Source: Anthoceros angustus
Taxonomy: Eukaryota > Plantae > Anthocerotophyta
Length of the DNA: 64,000 nt
Direction of reading: 5' to 3'
NCBI GenBank assembly: GCA_010909165.1
Contig: VJWM01000016.1
Location: 558,001 to 622,000 of the forward strand
The translations under genes and the position numbers were made by a program. The notes under the pieces were generated by a model, which saw only the letters and a program-made list of their open reading frames with translations, was not told the origin of the DNA and made no database searches. Positions 8,248 through 55,488 of the stretch are shown here, piece after piece (within the stretch, counting starts at the first letter, position 1; the number at the start of each line of letters is the position of its first letter).

Positions 8248-8985
8248 GGTCGCGGGCTGCTCCGTCAGCTTCTGCACGCACAAGGGAGCAAAAATACAGA
8301 TCCTGCTCCTCCCGAAAGCCCTGACATGGGGAGGCAGCCTGCTGTGCAGAATCAGGCCGTGGGTGGCAATATACGACAGTCCAAGAAAAGCTTCGTTGTG
8401 GAGAGCCAATTTGAATCCTACTCCCGATGGGACCATTCCAACCGGCCATAGACAAGACAAAGCGAGGTCAAAGCTCCATGCCTCGTCCCCGACCGCTCCC
8501 CCGCTTGCCCTAGATAGAATACAGTAACCCGGTTCCCCTCACACCATCAGCGTTGATGTTGCCTTCCTCGGGACTTCCCCAGCCGCTAAACTGTCTGTTT
8601 CCTGGTCCAACTGGCGGAGGCTCCAAATCGGCAAGAATCTGCCGCCTTCCCTGCCGCTGCTGCCGTCCCCGACCTGAGATCACACACTTCCTTACCCGCC
8701 GCATTTACTGGAATAGAAAAACACTTTATCCCCAACTGCAGTTAGGCTACGCATATACCGTCCGAGTCGACACTGTGTCATATGACATTCAGGGGATATG
8801 CCAGTGGCTGCTATGCAGGTTCCCTGCTCTGGACTCTGTTGCTGGGCGCTGCATTGCCGTGCACGAATTGCTGCGGTTGGATGTATCCTGCAAGGGAAGA
8901 TGAGGTGAGAGCGGGGCCACCATCGCATCGTTCTTATCGAGGGGCGGGTTGTGGAGCTGGTGCTCTTGGTAGGTAGGCAGACGGG

Positions 8986-9909
8986 ATGGCCAACCTGGCT
9001 GTCAGTGTCCAGGGAGCGGCAACAGGAGCGGAGCTATGGGGGCTGGAGCAGGAGCAGGCCCAGGGCAGGGGCTCGCTGCCCTGCGTGCCCTGCCTCCAGG
9101 CGATGGCGATGCGCGCCTGGCCCCTGCCCCTGCCGGTGGTGCGCATTCTGCGCACATCGTGGCAGGAGCAGCAGCGTCGCCAGCGGCAGCACCTGGTGGC
9201 GGCTGGGTCTCGGAGGGTTGTTAGGTTTCGGAGGCGGAGTACGGGGGAGGAGAGCGCCGATTGGAAGAAGGAGGTGCGGGAGTCCCTGAGCAGGCAGGGG
9301 AGTCTGGGGCTGGCCCTGCTCAGCACGTCGGCTGTGGCCAAGAGCCACATCAGTCCCTTCATCGAGGCCCTGCGCCACAACCCTATCTTCATGTCCGGGA
9401 TGCTGGCCTGGGCGCTGGCGCAGACCTTGAAGGTGTTTACGACGTATTTCGTCGAGCGGAGGTGGGATTTGAAGATGTTGATGGGGTCCGGGGGAATGCC
9501 CTCGTCGCACTCCGCTCTGTGCATTGGGCTGACCACGTCCGTGGCACTTTGTCATGGCGTGAGCGACGCCCTCTTCCCTGTTTGCTTGGGATTCAGTCTC
9601 ATTGTCATGTACGACGCTACTGGAGTGAGACGGCATGCTGGGATGCAGGCTGAGGTGGGTTTCAGTCGCTTTTGGTTTTTCTGCGATTCGGGTTCCGGGT
9701 TTCCTGTTCCCAGGGTTTTACTGAACCCCGGTGGTTTTGTTCGACAGATACTGAACATAATTGTGGAGGATTTGTTCCAAGGCCATCCTATCAGTCAGAG
9801 GAAATTGAAAGAGCTGCTGGGGCACACGCCTTTGCAAGTAGCTGCAGGGGCGTGCCTGGGGATGCTGGTTGGGTATGCTTGCTCGCAGAGTTACATGATG
9901 GTTTCTTGA
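8986..9909 (+). CDS. DUF212 acid phosphatase/vanadium-dependent haloperoxidase-related membrane protein with N-terminal extension
   Basis: Motifs AQTLK, SGGMPSSHSA, VMYDATGVRRHAGMQAE, LKELLGHTPLQV. One 93-nt GT-AG intron at 9655-9747. Confidence 0.9.
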   Translation: MANLAVSVQGAATGAELWGLEQEQAQGRGSLPCVPCLQAMAMRAWPLPLPVVRILRTSWQEQQRRQRQHLVAAGSRRVVRFRRRSTGEESADWKKEVRESLSRQGSLGLALLSTSAVAKSHISPFIEALRHNPIFMSGMLAWALAQTLKVFTTYFVERRWDLKMLMGSGGMPSSHSALCIGLTTSVALCHGVSDALFPVCLGFSLIVMYDATGVRRHAGMQAEVGFSRFWFFCDSGSGFPVPRVLLNPGGFVRQILNIIVEDLFQGHPISQRKLKELLGHTPLQVAAGACLGMLVGYACSQSYMMVS

Positions 9910-14063: not shown

Positions 14064-15347
14064 GTCATCGATTACCGAAAGGTCAATTACAAACAGCATG
14101 GCAAAGCGCCTTGCTGAATCGTCCTATGCGAAACCTGGCATGTATGCCAATGTGCAAAACCCTAACCAATTAGATCTAATCACAAACTAATACATCTCAC
14201 TTGACGGAGTGAACCGCCACTAAATCCTGGAGGTTTATAGCACAGGAAGAAACAAAGAAGTATACATTTTATTTTAGATAAAATATAATATAGGAGTAGA
14301 TAAAATATAATATCCCTTTTATCCCATCTTTTTCTGGAAGACGTAGGCCATAGAGGCTCTTGTCTTTCTGATTCCAGGAGTTGGGAATCCGAGTCGGGAC
14401 ACGAGAGGGACCCAGTCACCCAGGCCCCTCCAAGCTTGCATCCCTGTTGATAAACGCCCGTTTGAAAGCATCTTAAGATGAGCCTGAGGATATTTCACCA
14501 TAAAGCGTGCAAGCACATACCGTGGCCTGGATCCATCCAGTTGGCGGGACGAAAAAGGACTTGGAGCCGAAAGTAAGGACATGGAATGGGCAACGACGGC
14601 CCGAGGCCAAAAGTGAGGACACCGAGTGGGCGGAAAGATGGCCATTAGTCTTGCCTGCATAGGAACTTGAGAATTTCAGGCGTCTGGCCAGCGCCTTGGG
14701 GAAATATTAGGAGATTTTATTGAGGTGAAAAAACGATGGAAAAAGCCCATCTATAGGAGGGGACAACCAAAGGGGACCAGGGGGTCAAGGTGAAGAGGAG
14801 CGACTGAGCTCCCTACCTAAAGTCTTGGGGTGTCTCTTTTATGTTTTGCTCCTTTGCTCGTGTTTCTTCAATCCAACCCATGTGCCGAGGAACAGGCGGC
14901 GTGCGTTGTGAAGCTCGCTCACGGCGAGGTGGCCTGTCGCAGGCGGTTTCCCGTGAGTATGGCACGGTTCCCACACAGACAAAGGTACACATACATACAT
15001 CGGATATGATAGACGAGGGAGAAGATGATCATGCCACGGTCATCTTCACCATGGGCATGCTGCACGGGCTTGTCAGTGGGGCCATATCTGGCTGACGAGC
15101 ATACAACCTACGTGAGTAGAACCTTGAAGCCAGAAATGGATATCGCGCACCGAAGTGATTCAAGCCAGATCGTCCTCCATCACATGCCGTTAACAGGACC
15201 TTTGACATGTAGTGCAGTCCAGCCTACCCTTTGTTTGCTGCCGAATATCTACTTCGCCTGCGGGCAGACCTACAAAAGTGTTGGCTGGCCAGTGGCGACA
15301 ATGTTGTGCGCCTACCAATTCTGAGTTCCGATTGAGAAGCGGTAGCA

Positions 15348-16844
15348 ATGGCCCTCTGCCCCCAACAATCGTATACCTTCGGATCGGATTCCAACGCCCA
15401 CCAAGGGCAACTCACGGCGCAGGCACACTGCGCCATCTCTCCAGCTGGCGATCGCTCAACTCCCTCACCACTTGCTGCGACATTGCAGAAGCAAGGCCCT
15501 GCACACGTACGTGGTGGCCATGGCGGGGTCATCCTGCCAACGCGGATCCACACGCAATTCCGGCAGCTTCCTGTACGGCGGCATGCCATAGCGAGTGCCC
15601 GAGCGAGCTCATCAGCTGGTGGGCTGGCCGTGACCGGTCGCGAGGAGGCGGAAGTGGAGCGGGAAGACCCTGCCAAGTGGAGAAGGGTGCAGAAGGAGCT
15701 GGTGGACGGGACGCTGGATCTGGAAGGACTGAAGCCGTCTCCAGCGCGGCGGGCGGAGCTGGTGGAGCAGGCGCTGGCGGGCGCGGAGACCGGATTCTTC
15801 TACATCAGCAACTTCGGCGTGGACCAGGCCCTCCTGGATGACGTGCGGGCCGAGTCCTTCCGCTTCTTCTCGCAGCCCATGGAGGAGAAGTTGAAGACGA
15901 GGACGATGTTGAAGATCAACGACGGGCGGGCCTACGGCTACGGCGTCGACTTTGGCGGCGACGCCGCCAACACGGAAGGTGCAGCGCTGCCGGAGCCCAA
16001 GATCCGGGAGGTGTACCGCCTCCGAGTGCACCCGGAATCTCACCGGGTGGAGAAGGCCTGGCCTCCCGCGCTGCCCAGCTTCAGGGAGAAGTTCTCGCTG
16101 TACGGGGACCGGATCCTGGCGGCGGCGCACTTCCTGGGAGGCCTGCTCACGGAGGGGCTGGGCCTGTCGGAATCCTACATCACCAACACCTACGGGCCGC
16201 TGCTGCTCAACATGGTCATGGCCAGGCGCCTGGCCCGGCCGCAAGGAGGAGGAAAGGGCCTGCCCACGCACACCGACAGCAACCTCTTCAATTTCCACGT
16301 CGCTGACGGCGTGCGGGGCTTGGAGCTCTTCCATGACGGGCAGTGGTTCACCGTGCCACCGCTGCTGGACCGCGCGCTCTTCACCATCGGGGAGGACATG
16401 GAGGTACGTGCGTGCGCTATTTGATGAACATTGCACAAGCAAGCTCTGCTCATGACAATTCTGTCTGAATCATCAATGCGTTGCAATTAAACATCGCAGA
16501 CTTTGAGCAACGGTAGGTGCTACGCCGTGTACCACAGAGTTGCGGCTGGAACTCGATTACGGCAGTCGATGATCACCACATGCGATGTCGGGCGGGATGA
16601 GATCATTGGACCCGCGCCGCAGCTCATCGACGACCACAATCCCGCTCGATACTTGGTGAGAAAGCAGGCGGACCGGACCGACCACATCCTTCAGGCCTTT
16701 CATCGTGGGATCAAGCCTGACCGCACCAAAGCCCCTCTCCTCGTACATCCCGACCGACACCTCGACCGCACCAGGAACCTTTATTATCACGGAGAGGGAG
16801 AGGAGGAGTTGCTCTACATCAATGGCGAGCCGTTGCTCTACTGA
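15348..16844 (+). CDS. 2-oxoglutarate/Fe(II)-dependent dioxygenase (DOXC-type), 2 exons, 466 aa, long N-terminal extension
   Basis: Exons 15348-16403 and 16500-16844. GFFYISNFGV, Fe-binding HTD, distal YHRV and 2OG-binding RQS are all intact. Confidence 0.9.
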
Positions 16845-17206: not shown

Positions 17207-17552
17207 ATACGTGGTGGTGATTCATTGATATAGCACATAGACAGATCGGTTGATGTGCTGCTCCATGGCCCCGGATGTAGACTACAATTCCATAATGTAC
17301 TGGGACTGTGAGACACTTGAGATACGTGGTGGTGATTCATTGATATAGCACATAGACAGATCGGTTGATGTGCTGCTCCATGGCCCCGGATGTAGACTAC
17401 AATTCCATAATGTACTGGGACTGTGAGACACTTGAGATACGTGGTGGTGATTCATTGATATAGCACATAGACAGATCGGTTGATGTGCTGCTCCATGGCC
17501 CCGGATGTAGACTACAATTCCATAATGTACTGGGACTGTGAGACACTTGAGA
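17207..17552. repeat. 3 x 115-bp identical tandem repeat, plus a partial unit at about 17160
   Basis: gtggtggtgattcattgatatagcacatagacag... starts at 17211, 17326 and 17441. Confidence 0.95.
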
Positions 17553-17841
17553 GAGACTCTACAATTTAGAGTATCTTATCCTTTGCAACAAAAGGTAACT
17601 TATGGGAGTTGCGCTTGTGGATGCTATACTAGTACCTAGGCTTGCAATATTCCTTGAAAGAGGATCTTGCCCGTGGCGGGTTGGTCACCTCGTGCACACA
17701 AGGTGCAGAGTCTTGGTGTGCGACCTATAAATGCACAATAGTACTAGTTCTAGCTCTCGGTCGAGTGAAGGGACTGTGAGTTGAGGTGCAATTAAATACC
17801 GGTAGATGCAGCTGAACTAAGCAGGGTGCTGCTCGATTGCA

Positions 17842-18482
17842 ATGGCCCTCTGCCGGCATCAGTCCCTGCCATTGTGCGCTCGCGGTGGGATGCGGTGAAC
17901 GCGTACGAGATCCTGCACCACCGCCCTCAACCTCGCCCTCTGCAGCATGGGTTGCAGGTTGTACGCAGCAAATCCCCAGCTCCAACTCCCTCACCGCTAC
18001 CTGCAGGGGTCAGACGTCCGAGACGAATTCGGGAATGGCGCACCTCCGATTGCAAGTTCGCCGTGCCACTGCTGCATACGGCTGCCGCGCACGGCATCGC
18101 CCGAGCCTCCTCCTCATCAGGCCAAGGGCTGGCCCAGCTGGCGGAGGGTGCGGAGGCTGAGCTTCCCATGGAGTTTCCGGTCGAATCCCCTGCGAGCTGG
18201 AGCAGGGCCGACAGGGCGCTGGTGGACAGGACGCTGGACCTAGAAGGGTTGCAGCCGTCCCCGGCCCGGCGCGCGGAGCTGGTGAAGCAGGCGGCCGCGG
18301 GAGCGGAGACCGGCCTGTTCTACGTCAAGAACTTGGGCATCGACTTGGGCTTGCTGGAGGACGTCCGGCGGGAGGCGTATCGCTTCTTCACACAGCCGGT
18401 GCAGAAGAAGGCCAAGACGGTGGCGTCCCTGCCCGTCCCCGACGGCCGCACATACGGCTACTCCTTCGACTTCGGCGGGGAC
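17842..18482 (+). pseudogene. 2OG-Fe(II) dioxygenase paralog, 5' part (frameshifted and truncated)
   Basis: ATGGCCCTCTGC start like copy 1, but out of frame with the conserved part (LDLEGLQPSPARRAELV, GLFYVKNLGID, GRTYGYSFDFGGD). Homology stops abruptly at about 18482, before the HxD motif. Confidence 0.85.
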
Positions 18483-19824
18483 AGGCTCCAGGACTCTCTT
18501 AACTGAATGATTTGAATGTCGGAGCTGCACTTAACCAGGTTTTACAGATATCCTGCAGAGTCGGATGACCGACTCCTCTCTCAGGCGCAATCAGAAGCTC
18601 CCATAACAGTAGGAACAATGATCACTACGACCTACAGCAATGATCTACGACTGAGCTGCACACAACGGCTAAAGTTTGTCAGGCAACAGAGGAACAATTC
18701 GACTCTATTAGGCAACCGACTGTCCAGCTCCCAATTAAAAGCTTAAACCTTTAAGGCCAAAGGAAGAGATAACAGCACAAATTGGATTTTGATGCTTGCA
18801 GACCCACACAACTAGGCGGAAGAGAGCAACAGATGTCTCAAATCAGGGATGCTACCCGAGGTGTGGATGGAAATCAGTTTGCTTTCAGTCTGATCTAGCC
18901 CAGAAAGGCGAGGGCAGCAACAATAGGGTCCAAGTTCCAACAATTCAAAGTAACACCTGACCACAGAGATAAAGCGATGATTGGTGCTGTCCAATGTTTG
19001 CCATCCAGTGATGCAAAGATGCTGCCCAACATTCCGCAACACGACAGCAAGGCCAGACAGGATTTGAATTCAAGGTTCTCATGGAGATACCTCATCGGCT
19101 AGCAGAATTTGATGCAGAGCTTTGTGACAGTGTTACAAGCATGGAGAAACGTGCGCGCGGGATCTTGGTAGACTGACCACAAAGGGTTGATGCAGAGCTT
19201 TATGGTAGTGTTTGGTTACTGGCAGGGGGAAACGTGCGTGATCTTGACAGACTGACGACAAAGGGTATGGTGAGAGACACGACCAGGACGTATCCGATGA
19301 TGACTACACGAGCTGGTAGGACGGAAGGCCCGGTGCTCATCCATAACAAGGAGGAACGGCATTCACAGTCTATAAGACAGAAAACACAACGGAGATGGCG
19401 GATCAACCCTATCTTGGAGGCATCGGAGCCTGCATCACTCGCCCCGATTGCTGGGGTTTTGCGGCTCGGGAGTAGGAAGGTGCCAATCGAGCCGGTGGCT
19501 CTGTGGCGAAGGGTTGGGACCACCAGGGCACCTCGGGGCAGGCCGGCTTCGCAGGTCTCTTCCGGGGCATCACTGCCCATCAATTTGCAGGCATCGCAGC
19601 TGGAGCGGGAATTCCTTCTGCCGCGTGTGGCACTCTTGTGCCGCCCATCGGCCGGCTCTCAATCTGCAGCTCAGAGTTCCGCGGACCAGGCCGGCGACTT
19701 CGCAGGTGGAATCGGGCAGCGTTCTTTTGCGCTTGCATGGCTTGATCTCGGGAGGATAGGTACCTACTAGGTGGTATGGATTGTTGAGGTCCCGGTTTTG
19801 CACCGGTGGAGCGAGGATTGAAAA

Positions 19825-24639: not shown

Positions 24640-29809
<5,170 letters not shown>

Positions 29810-32210
29810 TGCTCCTCCCCCTCTGGCAGCCGTCCGTCACCAATCCGTGGCCCCCGCTGCCACCAGTTCTGCCGCTGCGGCTGCGGCTGCGGCTGCGGCT
29901 GCAGTAGCTGCCATGGACCGTCCCGTTGCAATGGCGGCCCGGCCATTCTCCCGATTTCTCAGTTTTGTAGGAAGGCTTGATGGACGCTCCCTCCTCCATG
30001 TTTCCCGCCACTGCTCCCCACGCTGCGCAAACAGTCCTCAAGGCGTGCAAAGCTCGTCGCTGAAATCCCGGGCTGCCTCGGAGTCCCAGGCCCATGACTC
30101 AACACTGCAGCAGTTGGGAACTTGTAACCTACCTGTCTACCTACCTACCTACCGACCTGTTTACGTAGGTATATTTTTAAGAAAACGCGAAAGCTTGGTA
30201 AAAGCTTACCAATAAAAATATTATTATCCTGATAAAACCTGATTGAAGGCCGATTTGAGAAAATCTATCACATCTTTCTTTCATTCTTAATGGTAGATCC
30301 GGGTTCAATTTCTTGGGTTGAGTGTGCCGATGTGCTTGCATTCCGTGATGCAATTGCTTCCGTTATGACTGGTTAGCGATGCTGCCTACTTGCTTTGGTT
30401 GCCTCTCTCGCAGCCCTCTCTCGTGCCTTTTTGTGCTTGCTTCTCCCGATGCTTGTGTTCTCGTTCCAAGCGCTTTCTTTCCAACTAGATTACTCGATTG
30501 CTGCCCTTGCCCTTGCTGCTTTGGCCTTAGCCTCCTCCTCCACCTTTGGATTCGCAATCTCAATCCTCATCTTCTCCTTCCCAGCCCGACGATCCAGTCT
30601 CTCAGGCCTCTTGCATTCAGCAGCTGTCTCTTTCATATGTAGAGCAATTTGACTTTCCCTGCTCTCTTCAACTTATAAGAGCCCAGGCGTTGCATTCAAG
30701 GGTGTTACATTGTAGGCGGAGATGAGGAGAGGCACTTTGGTGGGATTGTTAGGCCACAATTTCAGGTAGAACTCAAACAATGGGTGAGGTTTTCATTCAT
30801 GGTGTCTTACCAAAATTCAAGTCAAGGGAGACACGATGTTAATTAGTAGGATTATTACATCTCATGATGACAAGACCTAGAAAATAGGTGAGAAACGCAG
30901 CGTTTCAGTTTGTATGTACATAAGAGGTGGAGCAGTCGACATCACGTAAGCAAGGTGGCAGTGCTGGCAACGCACAGTCCCCGGTGATGCGTCGCAAGCT
31001 GGAATTCCTCTGCCACCATGGAAACAGATACCGTGCGTAAGTGTGTGGGACTCTGCTCCAGGCACGTTATAGCCCCCGCCCCCCTTTCCATGCAGTCTAG
31101 CCTCCTGCAATGCATGTACTGAAATGTCACACCTCTTTTCTCCCAAAATCTTGGAATGTGGGCAGCCCCAGCCGCACGTCCTCCGTCCTCCGTCCTCCGT
31201 CCTCGATTGGCGAGTTGTCATCCGAGGACCGAGCCTCACAGTCTTTCCCCTAAACAGCATCGAGCAGGCCTCCAGTCTCACCAAGTATGTATCGGGCATC
31301 GGGCATCGGGCTTGGCGCTTGGGTTGGGGTGAAGTGGCTGGGCACTGACGTGACGAGCCGACGAACCGACTCCCCTAACACTGGCCTCTCAATATTAGAA
31401 TATATGTTTGTGCATACATACGAAGTACACCTGTTCCCCCTCCCCCCCTGTGAACTCTGAACAGGCCCAGGCTCACTGTCAGGCTCTCACAGGCTCTGGG
31501 ACTTTTTATAGCATTTCCATTGCATCTCATGGGTATTCTTTGCTGTGGAAAGAACAAAAATGGAAATGGCAACGGAAATGGGTTGGCCACGGTCAACGGG
31601 AGGCGGGTAGTACTGGCTGCCGCACCGCACGGGCTGCTGGAAGTGAGAGTGCGCAGCAGCGAGATGTGCGGGCACACTGCCACTATCCTTGAGTAGAGCC
31701 CGCGTTGCACGGCGGGGAAGCTTCTCGGGATTTCACAGCTTGAACTGGAGGCGGGAGGGGAGCCTGAAGGCGAGCTAACCATGTATGTACGCTTGGTTGG
31801 AATGTCGTCCTTTTCAGCGTGTGGCTCCTGGGCAGCGGGTGGGCCGCTTTGTCCCTTCTCTTTGCCCTTGCCTGCTCCAGGCTCCAGGCTCCAGGGCGTG
31901 CATTGGCGACCTGCGTCTCACTCATCGTGATGCTTGCGCACTACCTGCTGCGGAATGCGCGTGTCCAGGTAATGGCAGCGCTCGGAATCTCACTGCTCGA
32001 TTGCGGCTTGCCGGGAGACGGAGTTCGGGAGCAGTGAGCATGAGCTCATCTGCAGGCTGCTGAGTGAGGTAGGGGAAGGGGGGGAGTGAGAGGCGTCTTC
32101 GACTTGGCTTGTGTTGCTGTGTCAAGTGGTGATGGAGGAGGAGGAGGCGCTTGTTTTTATGGAATTCCTCATGTCATCCAGGTACCAGGCAGGCTCGCCG
32201 GTTGTGCGTC

Positions 32211-37305
<5,095 letters not shown>

Positions 37306-37873
37306 TAAAAGTGCCGATTTAGCTGTAAGTCTGCAAGATCGCAATTGTTCAATCGAACTGCCAGGAAAGAACTCTTTGAAAGATCGAAATTGTTCAATTG
37401 AACTGCCAGGAAAGAACTCTCCGGACTTGCAGCAAATGTGGATATCCGGAGAGGGACTATCATAATTTGGCTAGCACCTTGATTGTCAAGCAAGTCAAAG
37501 GCCGGAAACGTGGTATTGCGGTTGTGGCCTTGACTGCCGTTAACGGTATTACATATTTGGTTCTTCATGACAACGCACCTGTCCACCTTCCTAGTACGAC
37601 TCTACACTGGGAACGTAAGAAGGCATCAAGGGTGCAATGAAATGATTGGTCCGAACACTACAATATAAATGCTGCCCAGTTCCTATCTACTGCAAAGAAT
37701 TGCACTGGGCAGTCGCTGTCAATTGTTGCATCTTCGGACCAGATGCAACAGATACACATGGACAGCCCTACGAGCAAGTTGGTTGACTGAAACTGGATAC
37801 TTAGGGAGCAGCTTCCTCTGTAGCCGTGTTGAATGCACTCCGCGAATTCCCTTCCCTGTACATATGCGCAGTG

Positions 37874-37879
37874 TATAAG
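37874..37879 (+). promoter_or_regulatory. Candidate TATA box for the peptide gene at 38126
   Basis: TATAAG about 250 bp upstream of the ATG. Confidence 0.35.
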
Positions 37880-38125
37880 TTGAGTTCCAACTTCTTCACT
37901 GACATCACACCCTCCTCCTCGACGCTAGTCCTGAGAAACAATCTCCCAGACGAGCTAGTAGCACTGCCAGTGCCCGCTGCCCAGCAAGCAATTTGCTCAG
38001 TGGTCACTACCTGTGCCCAGGAAGCAGGAAGCAGGAAGCAATCTCCGGAGTGCCCACAGCCAGTCAGCCTTGCTCCGAAATCGTCTGTGTCGGGTTGAAA
38101 CGGACCAGGAAGGTGTAATTGGAGG

Positions 38126-38524
38126 ATGGCTTCTTCAATTTTGGCGATCTTCGTGACGATTCTTCTGCTCATAACCATGTCCACAGAGAGTGTTCTGGCC
38201 ATCAGGAAAGCCACCACTTTCAATGACAGTCCGCCTGCTGCACCGACCATAGGCTGCCCCGACGCGCATCAATTCAAAGACGTTGATATGACAATGGTAC
38301 CAGCTGGAATCCGATTCGGAATAGCCGAGGAAGATGCAGACGAAGACATGGACAGAGACTCGGACACGGACACAGACAGAGATGCAAGCAGCTTTGTTCC
38401 GGAGACCCATGGTGGATTCGCGTTGGAGGGTGCCCCACCGGCCCCGGGTCCTAGAATGGCGCCCGATGTTGATGTGCGAAGGATGCTGTGCGTGACCTCA
38501 ATACCCGGTGGTTGCTCCCCCTGA
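38126..38524 (+). CDS. Small secreted peptide precursor (132 aa) with C-terminal RRML-CVTSIPGGCSP
   Basis: Hydrophobic N-terminal signal (ILAIFVTILLLITM...VLA), acidic pro-region and C-terminal two-Cys loop. Clear paralog at 40163-40519. Confidence 0.8.
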   Translation: MASSILAIFVTILLLITMSTESVLAIRKATTFNDSPPAAPTIGCPDAHQFKDVDMTMVPAGIRFGIAEEDADEDMDRDSDTDTDRDASSFVPETHGGFALEGAPPAPGPRMAPDVDVRRMLCVTSIPGGCSP

Positions 38525-39299
38525 CTGATTTTTTTCGGTCCCGTCTGCTCCGTCTGTCAGGAATGCCTGTCTGCTCGGACCGGCATTCCCGACCGGCCGG
38601 ATCGATCTTGAGCTGGGCTTCCATCCAACTTCAATTTGAAGTGCCAAACAACGCACTTGAAAGATTCTTGGTAGGAATTTGTTTGTGTTGAGAGCCTCAT
38701 TGGCTAGGTGTAAGTCCTATAGGACATTCATTTATGGCTGTTTCCAGACAGGAAAGAGCCACACGGATTGGAATAGCACACTGCTCGCACGGAGCAGCAG
38801 AAGCTGGGCAAAATCGTCCATGGCTGTAAATGTAGTCGATTTCAGGGGTCGAATCCTTGATTTTCATGGTTTAACAGTTGCTGCACACTTGTTCTAATGG
38901 ATTTGGCTATCTCCAACAACGTACGAGACCCTGATTAAACGGCTTGCAAGTGGCGGGTGAACCCGTCAAGTTATGTGTAAAAGTATGGATCTGGATACTC
39001 CTACTGTAAAGAGCACACGGCACCGTGCAAGCACTTTATGCAAGCCATTCCTGACGGAAAATGAAGCTTGCAAGAAAGCAGCCATCTACTAAATACGCAT
39101 AGGCGGCTGGGCAAAGCCAGGCCGACAATTTCAATGGAGGAGAGCCTGCCAGAAATTGAATCGTGCACAGAGAATATCCTCAAGGCGTGCAGACACAGTA
39201 CCCTGGTGACCGCCATTCAGACTGTAATTTAGCTACACAACTTGCAACTTACAATCCACCGCAGCCACATGCACATACACAGTACAATGGTACACAGCT

Positions 39300-39380
39300 G
39301 GGCAGGGGCAGGGGCAGGGACAGGGGAAGGGGCAGGCACAGGGGCAGGGGCAGGGGCAGGGGCAGGAGCAGGAGCAGGGG
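39300..39380. repeat. (GGGGCA)n G-rich microsatellite
   Basis: About 13 imperfect hexamer units. Confidence 0.9.
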
Positions 39381-40162
39381 CCAGGTTGAAGTCTTCAAGG
39401 GATGACCACTGACAACCTGCCAGGAAGTGAATACTGCGTGACCCAGTCTATCTGACATCACCGCTTGACCAAACCGGCATGCGCGATGCGTCATCGCATT
39501 CCTGGCATTAAAGGGAGCTGTCCGTTTACACGCATTGACCGAAGGTCTCCACAAAGACTTGACAGTGTTAATTGCCTGGAGTGCGGGCCAAGTCTCCGCC
39601 CACGGTTTTGATGAGGATGGGGATCAAGCAGGTCTGAGGAGCAGCAAAACTCATCTTTCAGATTTTCAGAGCAATTTGCTCCGTCTTAATAAGGGGACCT
39701 GAGAACACGCAATGTGCAATGTGAACGGTCGAAATCAGGAATTTCTACACATCATTTCCTATCTCCAATCAGCTTATGATGAGAGACGTCTAGTAATTAG
39801 GAGGGGTCGGATGCCCCTGTCCACCTCCAACTCCGGGCTCAGCTCCGGGGGAGTCCACATGCCAGGGATGCACCTGAGGTCTGCCCCCGGCGGTCGGTGG
39901 GGGGAAACCCTTCTGTGCCCTGGCGTTCTGTGATGCCCCTCGTTGTCGAAGGGAATTGAGCTTGAAGAATATCGCCGGGAATAGATGTAGCCCAGCCAAG
40001 GCCCAATGCGACTGTTGGCCACCTTTCCGCAAGGAACCGCAGCGCGAAAACAAATCGATGCCTGGTCTCAAATACTGTTGAGCTCCCAGTGGGCGGCGAA
40101 GACGAAGATTACTTCACAATGTTCGTTCTGCATATACCATCCCTGTACGAGAAGTACCATTT

Positions 40163-40519
40163 TCAAGGAGAGCAACCCCCGGGTAAAGTACTCAAGCAAT
40201 ACAGCTCTCGTCGCTGTAGCACATCGGGAGCCAACCTCAGACCTCGAGACCCCAGGAATTGGTCCGACCCAGCTGCTGGAGGAGGCCTAAGGTCTCCAAC
40301 CTGCTGCGCTGGGGCCTCCGCAGTCCCAAACTCAATCCCTCCCACCAGGTGCCCATGCCCGTCCTCGAATTCCGCCAGGGTCGCCTCGGAGGGTGCTGGT
40401 GCCGGCGTGCTGTTGAAGGTGGCGGATTTCCTAGCGGCCAGAGCAGAATGTGCGAAAAATGCGAACAGCAGAAGCGAGCAGAAGAAGAGAGCCCGCGCCT
40501 CGTGAAGAGATGACGCCAT
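40163..40519 (-). CDS. Small secreted peptide precursor (118 aa) with C-terminal RRELY-CLSTLPGGCSP
   Basis: Signal peptide (LFFCSLLLFAFFAHSALA). Shares RK..TFN, GI.FG.AE, R.APDV..RR.L and C..(S/T)(I/L)PGGCSP with the 38126 gene. Confidence 0.8.
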   Translation of the reverse strand: MASSLHEARALFFCSLLLFAFFAHSALAARKSATFNSTPAPAPSEATLAEFEDGHGHLVGGIEFGTAEAPAQQVGDLRPPPAAGSDQFLGSRGLRLAPDVLQRRELYCLSTLPGGCSP

Positions 40520-40806
40520 TGCTGCAGCGGAACCCAGAATCGCAGGCCTCCTAGGAGCCGAGTGTCGAATTGAAGTCCAGCTCCAGCACCTGGAGATGTA
40601 GATACACCAGCAGCAGTTGTGTCGGTCGGGATGGGATCGGGGTCTGGTCGGGGTCGGTGTCGGACAGCTGGAAGCCTGGAAAGCGGAGTAGCCGATTGTG
40701 GGTGTCAGAGCACAGTACAGCTCGTGGTGTGCTGTGGTGTTGGGCTGTGCTGGGCTGCGTTGCGCTGCAGTGATGCGGGTTGCTGGAGGTTGGGCGCGAG
40801 CCCAGA

Positions 40807-40812
40807 TTTATA
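40807..40812 (-). promoter_or_regulatory. Candidate TATA box for the peptide gene at 40519
   Basis: CTATAAAT on the minus strand about 290 bp upstream of the ATG. Confidence 0.45.
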
Positions 40813-42899
40813 GAGGACCCAGCGACCCCTGGCCAGGCACTGGCTGCCTGCACTCGGAGCTTCACCGCTTCACCGTCGGTTGGTTCAACACGGTTAGGGG
40901 AGAAGCTGCTCCAGCGACCCCTGGGCCCTGGCAGCTGCTTGCCTTGTTGGTCATCTGTCAGAGACTGTCGGTTCTGAGACGCCATCGTTGCCTGGCTCTT
41001 AGCGGGTCTGTCAACGCCACTCGCCACTAAAAAAAGTCGGCTCGAAATTGCTTTGCTATCCCGCGCTTGACTCCCTCTTCCCCCCATCGGCTGCCATGAA
41101 AATGCTGAAATGCATTTCGCCCACAAAGTCACCCCACTTTGCCCTAAATCTCCGCAGCCCGGTTCGGGCTCGGAACTTGCATAATGTGCGTCCGCCAGTG
41201 AGAGACCGCGCCTGCCGTTCGCACATTTGTCAACCCTTTACCTGTCGGGACAACGGGCCCCGGTGTTGCTCGTCTCCTCGCCGCCGCATGCCGCCTATAT
41301 GAATTCTATACACCGTAGCGGCGCACTGGCTGCTTGTCAATGGCCGAAAGACGAAATCCCGGACCAGTCTTGCAACTTCCGCAACCGAGTCTCAGGCTGG
41401 TCAGCAGTGGGTCTTGTACAGTGGTTGTAGTGGTCTTTTAGCACCGGTCGGTTTATTTTTAAATTTTGATGATGCTTGAGCACAGCAAAGGCTGTGGCAC
41501 AAGCATCGTTCGAAAGCCAGTCAGGCAGCAGGCTTCGTCGAAACTGAGTTGGCTTGAGTGAAGAGTTTGGTCCGAAGTGGAACGCGCAGCTTCCCGTTCC
41601 AAAGAACTCCTGCGGGACCGGGTTCTCACAATGTGGTGGACGGGGGGTTACAGTGCAGCGGTAAGTTTTTTGGTGAAAGTTCGGAACAGACCGGTTCGGG
41701 CCTTACCTATTACAGCCCAGCCTTGGGTTTTAGGATTTGGAGGAAAAGGGATACGCCTTGAAGGGAGCCAAAAAGGACCCATCACCCATCGTTTGTTGCC
41801 GTACCACAACACTCTATACCTATGCGGTGGTGGATCACAAGGGCAACGTCTGGCACGGCTCGAGTCAAGGAGTTTGGCCCGTTTCAACCCCTATTGGAGT
41901 TTGGAGGTGATTATAACTAGGAGTCAATTTCCCCACTCTTTAGTCCACAATGACGCCGAGCTGTTGTTTCCTACCGGCAACTCAGGCTTTATAGGGTTGC
42001 TTGGCTTTAATATTTCTTCCGAGTCTAGATCTCCTAAATCTTAAATAATAGTTAAATATTTATTAATATTTTTACAATATCTGATTATTTAAAATATTTA
42101 AAGTATGTAAATTTTATTTTATATAATATAATAAATGATAAATATTACATCTGTAAAGTGACGTAGTGTGAACCGTATCCCAAATATATAACTGCTAGAA
42201 ATACATACACGAAAGACTCAAAGCCCTTCTTCCATTCTTTCCATTGCGACTAAGTGCCCATTTCCACCTAAAGTTTCATCAAAGGATTATTTTCACACTA
42301 TACAAAAGAAAGGATTTGCATTTCGCCCTCGCATGCATTTCGTGACATGCATCACATGCATGCATTTCAGAGATTCCTCCTCCCGCATCCCGTGATCCAA
42401 TTGTTCTTGACCTAACACCTTTTGGTGACTCTTCTTCATAAAGCGGCACAGGAAAACCAGTGGCAATATCTCATGCCCTTGGTGAAATACCTAGAATACC
42501 TGGGTAAAGTATAAAGGTAAGATGGAACTTCTTGAAAGGTACTCACATTATATATCGACTTTGAGGTCGTTCATATTACAGCCGCCATAGGTACCATTGC
42601 TACTCTAAGTACCCTTGTTCCGATATTTGGAGTATTTTTGTTTATCACCAATTAACTCATAAAATAATCAATCCTAACCTTAGCAATTAATCAATAACTT
42701 AAACTAGGGATTTAGATATAAAGAGCGCACTAATTTAGATAGTGCCTCTAAGATACTATTTCATCAAGTACCTTGTTTACAAGTAGCACCATATATTCAA
42801 TTGTGCCTTATTCCATTGGAGCTCTCACACTTGGGCTTGAGGGTTAAGATTTTGAAATGCAAGGTTTGGAACCCTTCTGGCACTACGCCATCTCTCCAA

Positions 42900-52631: not shown

Positions 52632-53084
52632 CTATTGCGAGCGTGCCGATGCAGGTAGCTGTCGGTCCTGAGTCCTTAGTATCTGGCTTTCCGACGAAGG
52701 CAGCCCAGGATCCTTGTGATCCGCCGCCGCCGCCGCCGCCCCCTTCCCCTCCACCCTGGCCTCCAAACCGCTGCCGCCGGCAGAGGTCTCGGCCGTGATC
52801 CGGCGCACAACAAACCCGGCCGGCCCAACATCGTTGTGGATAGGCGAGGGCCCGGACGGGGGGATGCGCGGGGCTCTGGACAGCGTGTACCCCCCCGTCC
52901 GTTTCACCGGTACAGGATCCCGCTCCCCCACCACCACAGGGACATCTCCACTCCCAACTGCCACCTCCACCAGCAGCTTGGGCCCGGGCCTCCCGGCCGC
53001 AGCAGGCAGCATGGCCGGCCCCGCAAGCAGCAACGCCGCGGGTGCCAGCACCAGGAGGAGAAGGAGACGGACGAGGGCTGCCAT
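52632..53084 (-). CDS. Small secreted peptide precursor (150 aa) containing the IDA/CLE-like dodecapeptide RIPPSGPSPIHN
   Basis: ATG at 53084 gives MAALVRLLLLLVLAPAALLLAGPAMLPAAAG (signal-like). The motif is encoded at 52868-52833 within GGYTLSRAPRIPPSGPSPIHND. Confidence 0.78.
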   Translation of the reverse strand: MAALVRLLLLLVLAPAALLLAGPAMLPAAAGRPGPKLLVEVAVGSGDVPVVVGERDPVPVKRTGGYTLSRAPRIPPSGPSPIHNDVGPAGFVVRRITAETSAGGSGLEARVEGKGAAAAAADHKDPGLPSSESQILRTQDRQLPASARSQ

Positions 53085-55080: not shown

Positions 55081-55488
55081 ATGGCGGGCAAGTGCAGTGG
55101 AGCATATTGCGTGCTTCTGCTCTGCCTGCTCCTGGCGGGATTCTGCGAGCAGGGGATGGCCGGAAGGCGGGGCATGCCAGCTGCTGCAGCGAAGGAGCCC
55201 TCGGTCGTGGTCCCGGTCGGGGACCCGAGGGATGCCACTCAGCGCTGGACCGCGACCGGGGGGGACTCGGCCGGGCCGGTAGCTAAGGTGATTTCCGTGA
55301 GGAAGTGGAAACGTCCCGAGTCGCCTCCTTCCATGCCGTGGAGCGACATCGGGGAGCTGCTGGTGGACGGACGCGTACGGGAAGCAGCCAAGCAGCCTGC
55401 CCGCTACTCCAAGAAGCCTGCCACTCCGTCGCCGACTCCTCCCTCCCACCCGGGCACTTGCATCAGTACCGTGCCCGGGACTTGCTGA
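55081..55488 (+). CDS. Small secreted peptide precursor (135 aa) ending PATPSPTPPSHPGT-CISTVPGTC (CTNIP/SCREW-like)
   Basis: Signal peptide (AYCVLLLCLLLAGFCEQGMAG), then GRR, and a Pro-rich stretch before the terminal C-x7-C loop. The ORF track starts upstream, but the ATG at 55081 precedes the signal. Confidence 0.78.
   Translation: MAGKCSGAYCVLLLCLLLAGFCEQGMAGRRGMPAAAAKEPSVVVPVGDPRDATQRWTATGGDSAGPVAKVISVRKWKRPESPPSMPWSDIGELLVDGRVREAAKQPARYSKKPATPSPTPPSHPGTCISTVPGTC

Follow-up and report, generated by a model that had tools for sequence, protein, structure and literature searches.

In a stretch of 64,000 nucleotides from Anthoceros angustus (contig VJWM01000016.1 of assembly GCA_010909165.1, positions 558,001 to 622,000 of the forward strand; hereafter the window), we find three genes, here called A, B and C, that form an undescribed family of candidate signalling peptides. 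The observations support genes A and B as real, transcribed and under coding constraint. We read the three as a lineage-restricted family of secreted pro-peptides whose C-terminus would give rise to a disulfide-loop peptide, probably a signal: a plausible interpretation, though not an assured one.

Gene A occupies positions 38126..38524 of the window on the forward strand and encodes a 132-aa precursor with the tail RRML-CVTSIPGGC-SP. Gene B, at 40163..40519 on the reverse strand, encodes a precursor of 118 aa whose tail reads RREL-Y-CLSTLPGGC-SP. The two genes are convergent, with stop codons 1.6 kb apart, and their products are paralogous: BLASTP aligns them over the full length at 35% identity (E 2e-17), and MAFFT gives 44% identity across aligned columns. 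The similarity falls into four blocks. The N-terminal one consists of MASS and a hydrophobic core; the post-signal block, LA-x-RK-x-x-TFN-[DS]-[ST]-P, contains an N-x-S/T sequon (NDS in A, 38222..38230, + strand); a mid block reads GI-x-FG-x-AE; and the tail block follows the pattern R-[ML]-APDV-x-x-RR-x-L-(Y)-C-x7-C-SP-stop. In A this conserved tail, from RMAPDV through RRML and the loop to SP, lies at 38453..38521 (+). The C-x7-C loops themselves are CVTSIPGGC in A (38489..38515, +) and CLSTLPGGC in B (40172..40198, −).

The third family member, gene C, lies ~15 kb from this pair at 55081..55488 on the forward strand. Counted from the first ATG it has 135 aa: a signal-peptide-like N-terminus, and at the end a Pro-rich lead-in and the loop (PTPPSHPGT-CISTVPGTC-stop), with no RRxL. 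The tail is the sole part of A and B that it has in common with them. In the six-frame translation of the window, the motif C[ILV][ST][ST][ILV]PG[GT]C occurs 3 times against 9e-5 expected, and 0 times in 200 shuffles; a broader scan of the window for signal-peptide-like open reading frames (ORFs) with two cysteines near the C-terminus brought up no further member. The sequences are best explained if A and B arose by an old inverted duplication and C is a more distant relative within the family.

A search of sequencing runs returned one run of the same species (X1, 73% of sampled words) and four runs of one related species. The X1 assembly has 71,256 contigs and a total of 29 Mb, and it was placed on positions 37700-41000. 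Exactly two contigs fall there, both 100% identical to the genome (0 differences, 0 gaps) and colinear with it. One, of 970 nt, covers gene A without splicing (37920..38889, +), with a 5′ untranslated region (UTR) of 206 nt and a 3′ UTR of 365 nt; the other, of 1147 nt and equally unspliced, covers gene B (39635..40781, −), with UTRs of 262 and 528 nt. Within 37700-41000, no X1 contig lies over the 745-nt intergenic gap or the outer flanks. Because this two-contig pattern and the small total size of the assembly are unlike a genome assembly, X1 is read as a transcriptome, and we infer that its contigs are the unspliced mRNAs of A and B. The initial annotation of this DNA had described two convergent intronless genes; coordinates and sequences match, and the contigs run along the genome with no joints. 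It had also held that a lack of transcripts would count against its proposal, and each gene turns out to be covered by a separate identical contig of this probable RNA run.

What surrounds the transcript ends also fits mRNAs, in TATA spacing, ATG-free 5′ UTRs and start-codon context. A TATA-like box, TATAAG, stands 41 nt before the 5′ end of the gene A contig (37874..37879, +), and a TATAAA box 26 nt before that of gene B (40807..40812, −). There is no upstream ATG in the 206 nt and 262 nt of the two 5′ UTRs, and at each start codon a purine at −3 and G at +4 make a good Kozak context. Further upstream, a 29-nt element is found in two copies arranged as an inverted repeat and matching each other at 83%: one at 37805..37833 (+), ~90-115 nt upstream of where transcript contig A begins, the other at 40884..40912 (−), ~100-130 nt upstream of the start of contig B. 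It is the sole block that can be aligned between the upstream regions of the two genes, and in the window it occurs at these two sites only, with 0 expected. We regard it as a candidate cis-regulatory site, possibly shared by A and B and kept since the inverted duplication.

The intergenic region itself holds a microsatellite of the GGGGCA/GGGCAG type at 39294-39389, which is the source of spurious Gly-Arg and Gly-Ala ORFs and was skipped in read placement. Also between the genes, and outside both transcripts, a 180-nt contig of the related species (X2) matches positions 39448-39616 at ~90%; this match may reflect non-coding sequence kept in both species, or a small transcript of its own.

Coding constraint is seen at two depths. 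In the related species, contigs ~91% identical to gene A cover positions 37895-38826, and the list of indels takes in all gaps of the related-species contigs X2 and X3. The UTRs of this ortholog carry indels of 1, 1, 1, 1, 2, 5 and 1 nt. Its coding sequence has only two, +3 nt (after 38240) and −6 nt (at 38374, in an acidic D/T repeat), so the reading frame is kept. Substitutions were read up to 38419, that is codons 1-98, on the assumption that their listing is complete to that point: 8 are synonymous and 10 non-synonymous, with pN/pS ~0.37. The non-synonymous changes mostly exchange one hydrophobic residue for another in the signal peptide, and in codons 57-98 all five of five changes are synonymous.

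Between the paralogs, different codons are used at 26 of the 49 identical residues whose codons are degenerate. By the Nei-Gojobori method, synonymous divergence (dS) is >1 and saturated. Over the last 24 codons it is 1.13, with a non-synonymous divergence (dN) of 0.29; in the rest of the mature protein dN is 0.68. The saturated dS, the codon differences and the low dN of the tail together argue that the identities between A and B, those of the tail above all, have been kept by selection, and that the duplication is old. For purifying selection on the C-terminal loop, on which the first proposal had been made to depend, the paralog comparison gives support at the level of the tail (dN of 0.29 against 0.68 elsewhere). 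The same proposal had conservation concentrated in the tail. It is indeed strongest in the last ~24 residues, but it is not confined to them: the post-signal (RK..TFN[DS][ST]P) and mid (GI.FG.AE) blocks are common to A and B as well.

These data bear on the suspicion that A and B are chance ORFs in non-coding transcripts, or the remains of a decaying duplication. One could point to the absence of homologs in the databases searched, including a collection of 15 billion proteins that does not hold the exact sequences. Against it stand the synonymous changes under residues that are kept, the frame-preserving indels found only within the coding sequence of the related species, the ATG-free 5′ UTRs with a good Kozak context, and gene C, another ORF ending in this loop. 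Together they make chance ORFs hardly credible.

Searches for relatives were otherwise blank. Pfam has no family for A, B or C at E values up to 10; word-index protein searches gave nothing for any of them; a profile built from A and B found 0 matches among 1.84 billion protein representatives; and the exact sequences of all three are absent from the 15-billion-protein collection. PDB sequence searches gave nothing meaningful, the best score with ESM Atlas features was 0.77, under any useful threshold, and a literature search for the strings PGGCSP, SIPGGC, TLPGGC and TVPGTC returned 0 hits. A scan of metagenomes with back-translated A/B motifs confirmed no relative; 12 loci that matched the DNA pattern for C-x3-[hydrophobic]-PGGCSP-stop were rejected as short frames without precursors, in about the number expected by chance. 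The view that the family is undescribed holds up in all these sequence, profile, PDB, metagenome and literature searches, which are weak evidence of absence: since A, B and C are themselves missing from the protein collection, unannotated small ORFs of plants are poorly covered there, and the blanks are no proof of a one-genus family. The family appears to be confined to one plant lineage, probably hornworts.

The precursors have the look of secreted proteins. Signal peptides were judged by a heuristic of hydropathy and the −3/−1 rule. A, B and C each open with a few polar residues, followed by a hydrophobic core at least 12 residues long (mean Kyte-Doolittle value 2.7-3.4) and by small residues at −3/−1. 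The signal-peptide-like segment of A lies at 38126..38200 (+), with a likely cut at VLA|I, and that of B at 40436..40519 (−), with ALA|A; in C, whose N-terminus is hydrophobic too, GMA|G is the likely cut. By this measure the shared signal peptide first noted for A and B stands, and their products look like secreted pre-pro-proteins. The remainder of A, B and C is hydrophilic and partly acidic (A) or rich in Pro, Ala and Ser. An AlphaFold2 (AF2) model of precursor A, which agrees with the heuristic, is confident only for an N-terminal helix (residues 2-33), with pLDDT <50 elsewhere, a weak result given its two-sequence alignment. Once the signal peptide is set aside, the loop supplies the only two cysteines of B and C; A has a third, Cys44. 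Neither a transmembrane segment nor a C-terminal hydrophobic tail nor a CaaX box is present in A, B or C. CaaX prenylation and a glycosylphosphatidylinositol anchor were considered and rejected: only two residues follow the last cysteine, and the hydrophobic tail is missing. Altogether, the general features of small secreted pre-pro-peptides are there: an N-terminal signal peptide (by the heuristic), a variable pro-region, a conserved C-terminal peptide and a length under ~200 aa.

The same architecture could belong to proteins that are never processed, namely small, disordered, glycosylated secreted or cell-wall proteins in which the C-terminal disulfide is a structural cap. The sequon in the post-signal block of A and B and the SP/AP/TP-rich stretches would suit such proteins, as would the nearest language-model neighbours, Streptophyta 'cell wall protein' clusters, though their score of 0.77 is not significant. 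The strongest constraint, however, is on the C-terminal tail, which is also the only part found in gene C, and the middle region differs in length between paralogs and between species. We consider this explanation unlikely.

We now propose a path from precursor to peptide for the family read as secreted pro-peptides. The signal peptide would send the precursor into the secretory pathway and then be removed, leaving a presumably disordered pro-region, variable in length and partly acidic or Pro-rich, and the conserved C-terminal module. In the endoplasmic reticulum the two loop cysteines, 7 residues apart, would be oxidised to form a 9-residue disulfide ring. Directly before the loop in A and B stands RRxL, where a Golgi subtilase of the S1P/SBT6.1 type could plausibly cut; the candidate sites are RRML in A (38477..38488, +) and RREL in B (40202..40213, −). 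The assignment made at the outset, of RRxL to SBT6.1/S1P, agrees with documented sites of this protease, RRIL|A in RALF23 and RRAL|G in GLV1 (PMC13157962); in PROSCOOPs, RxxL/RxLx motifs are cut by SBT3-type subtilases (PMC13157962). Cleavage at RRxL would release CVTSIPGGCSP (11 aa) from A and YCLSTLPGGCSP (12 aa) from B, both uncharged. Either the loop peptide or a somewhat longer form would act as an extracellular signal sensed by a cell-surface receptor.

Secretion, the disulfide, the cleavage site, the length of the mature peptide and its signalling role are all drawn here from sequence. A signalling role is favoured because the precursor plan is that of plant peptide hormones, because the uncharged loop speaks against a membrane-active antimicrobial, and because elsewhere a single disulfide loop serves as the structural element recognised by a leucine-rich repeat (LRR) receptor kinase and its co-receptor; such a loop is essential in a plant ligand of this receptor class (PMC13585564, PMC13261660). 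An antimicrobial peptide was considered separately and is unlikely, the short loop peptide being uncharged.

Several points weigh against this interpretation. X1 is only guessed to be an RNA run; the signal peptides were called by a heuristic, not by SignalP; and the substitution data for the ortholog end at 38419, before the RRxL-loop tail, which is the main gap. The searches found no homologs beyond a genus-level pair of species, so deep conservation cannot be claimed. Moreover, gene C has no RRxL, the conserved block of A and B sets in at R[ML]APDV, 8-9 residues ahead of RRxL, and two more conserved blocks lie inside the pro-region. Because of these last three features, the functional product may be longer than the 11-12-mer, or something other than it; release of an 11-12-aa peptide and of a longer mature one would be equally possible.

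In one version of the longer product, a serious alternative though the less likely one in our estimate, the whole conserved tail of ~23-25 residues would be the mature ligand, in which R[ML]APDV..RRxL forms a linear anchor ahead of the loop; the basic residues of RRxL would then serve for anchoring, and no cut would be made there. The model here is CTNIP4(46-70), in which a 12-residue linear part precedes the loop (PMC13585564) and high affinity needs that linear N-terminal part, including Arg47 (PMC13585564). That conservation between A and B starts at G.R[ML]APDV, well upstream of RRxL, would suit such a ligand, and so would gene C, where an IDA-like lead-in, PTPPSHP, takes the place of RRxL and the distance from Ser to the first Cys is five residues, as in CTNIP4. 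On the other hand, both paralogs have RR.L immediately ahead of the first cysteine, an exact fit to known SBT6.1 sites, the lead-in of A and B lacks the IDA-like PxPxS motif, and no cleavage motif is evident further upstream.

The neighbourhood of the family was surveyed in the same window. An ORF of 150 aa with a signal peptide, at 52632-53084 on the reverse strand, encodes an IDA/PIP-like precursor; its peptide, RIPPSGPSPIHN (52868-52833), has a motif ending in HN, and the gene lies ~2 kb from gene C. Pfam has no family for it either (E up to 10). With A, B and C, this makes four candidate secreted-peptide genes in 64 kb. A relation of A, B and C to the IDA-like precursor as paralogs was tried and rejected: BLASTP gave E values of 0.004-0.05 for single pairs, weak matches of a compositional kind.

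Two ABC-transporter genes, both with an ABC_membrane domain, stand head to head at 26696-29836 (−) and 32133-37305 (+), and gene A starts ~600-800 nt past the end of the second. Tandem fragments of 2OG-Fe(II) oxygenase (DIOX_N) genes are found at 15336-16421 and 17796-18503 (+), and beside them one translated context recurs at 17268, 17383 and 17498 (17268-17509), which points to a tandem repeat of ~115 nt. A gene with a DUF212 (divergent PAP2) domain lies at 8977-9906. The TATA boxes, the monocistronic transcripts with their UTRs and the plant-type neighbours show this to be the DNA of a eukaryote, most likely a plant.

Single-disulfide signalling peptides of plants are described as little studied; SCREW/CTNIP and DEP, the only ones worked out, all come from seed plants (PMC13261660). 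According to a 2024 preprint, no lineage-specific peptide families have yet been identified outside angiosperms (10.1101/2024.05.13.593875). Both single-disulfide plant peptides and lineage-specific peptide families of bryophytes are barely explored, and an apparently bryophyte-restricted family that is transcribed and under selection offers candidate ligands or inhibitors in a hornwort model. At 11-25 aa the peptides are cheap to make and short enough for direct tests with synthetic material, and the family lets the age of loop-type ligands and their receptors relative to seed plants be tested.

Among known systems, a likeness in precursor plan is seen with RALF and GOLVEN/RGF, which, as proposed for A and B, are secreted pro-peptides with RRxL directly upstream of the C-terminal bioactive part; gene C lacks this motif. 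The YISY motif, the four-cysteine core and the Pfam RALF domain are all absent from A, B and C, as is the sulfated DY motif of GOLVEN/RGF. The mature part in these families is far longer than the 11-12 aa expected here.

The loop itself invites comparison with the Bowman-Birk inhibitors (BBI) and SFTI-1, whose geometry the initial annotation had recognised in it. What stands of this is the size of the ring, nine residues, and in A, B and C alike P1′ is Ser or Thr, P2′ aliphatic and P3′ Pro, as in CTKSIPPIC. What does not is the rest of the pattern: where Thr is conserved at P2, these loops have Val, Leu or Ile; Gly replaces Pro at P4′; and P1 is Thr or Ser, an unusual specificity residue for trypsin, chymotrypsin or elastase. 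McBride et al. 1998 are said to have found that substitutions of the P2 Thr strongly weaken BBI loop peptides. The ring has the size of the BBI loop, C-T-P1-S-X-P-P-X-C (PMC7760496), and departs from it at P2 and P4′. There are two cysteines against 14 in a BBI domain; the Bowman-Birk domain (PF00228, seven disulfides) gives no Pfam match at E up to 10, and the PDB holds no sequence match. SFTI-1 is cut from an albumin precursor, PawS1, with Asn/Asp for cyclisation by asparaginyl endopeptidase, whereas the loops described here sit at the extreme C-terminus, end in Ser-Pro in A and B, and have neither an albumin domain nor flanking Asn/Asp. A minimal Bowman-Birk/SFTI-like canonical inhibitor of extracellular serine proteases is accordingly quite improbable as the role of the loop; judged by its residues, the likeness is one of shared geometry, not of membership.

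The other comparison is with the phytocytokines CTNIP/SCREW and, in monocots, DEP, which are ligands of LRR receptor kinases of the HSL3/NUT superclade. They too have two cysteines and a single loop with an aliphatic-Pro pair. The resemblance to their core that had been suggested breaks down on ring size, motif register and C-terminus. In A, B and C alike, 7 residues separate the cysteines; the filter for confident CTNIPs is a spacing of 9-11 (PMC9191895). In place of C-T-N-[I/N]-P after the first Cys (CTNIP4, PMC13585564) the loops have CVTSIP, CLSTLP and CISTVP, with no Asn and the aliphatic-Pro pair one residue later. The C-terminal HN is missing: A and B end in SP, and C ends at Cys. As for the PVPxSGPN/S lead-in, it is absent from A and B, where R[ML]APDV..RRxL stands, and is matched in part by PTPPSHPG of gene C, whose IDA-like Pro/Ser lead-in ahead of the loop follows the plan described for SCREW. 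No sequence similarity to these families is detectable in A, B or C. Their range differs as well: CTNIPs are reported only from angiosperms (PMC9191895) and the NUT/HSL3 superclade is reported to begin in gymnosperms (PMC13261660), a seed-plant distribution set against this apparently bryophyte genome, and Anthoceros has 3 undifferentiated HSL-clade receptors (PMC8462819). On our preferred reading the loop peptides would follow the general plan of CTNIP/SCREW/DEP without homology to them.

Finally, the lead-in of gene C, PTPPSHP, is similar both to PIPPSAP, the IDA core, and to PVPxSGPN/S, a motif common to IDA and SCREW that occupies their receptor pockets (PMC13261660). A and B have no such core, and IDA/IDL peptides are linear, free of cysteine and end in HN. 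A rather speculative reading, which we think improbable as it stands, would join these strands: the C-x7-C peptides may be receptor ligands on the CTNIP/SCREW/DEP plan, a linear anchor with a disulfide-locked loop, that arose in a bryophyte beside an IDA-like gene, with gene C still carrying the IDA-type PxPPSxP core. If this were true, cyclic-loop ligands for HAE/HSL-type LRR receptor kinases would either predate seed plants or have evolved twice from IDA-like genes.

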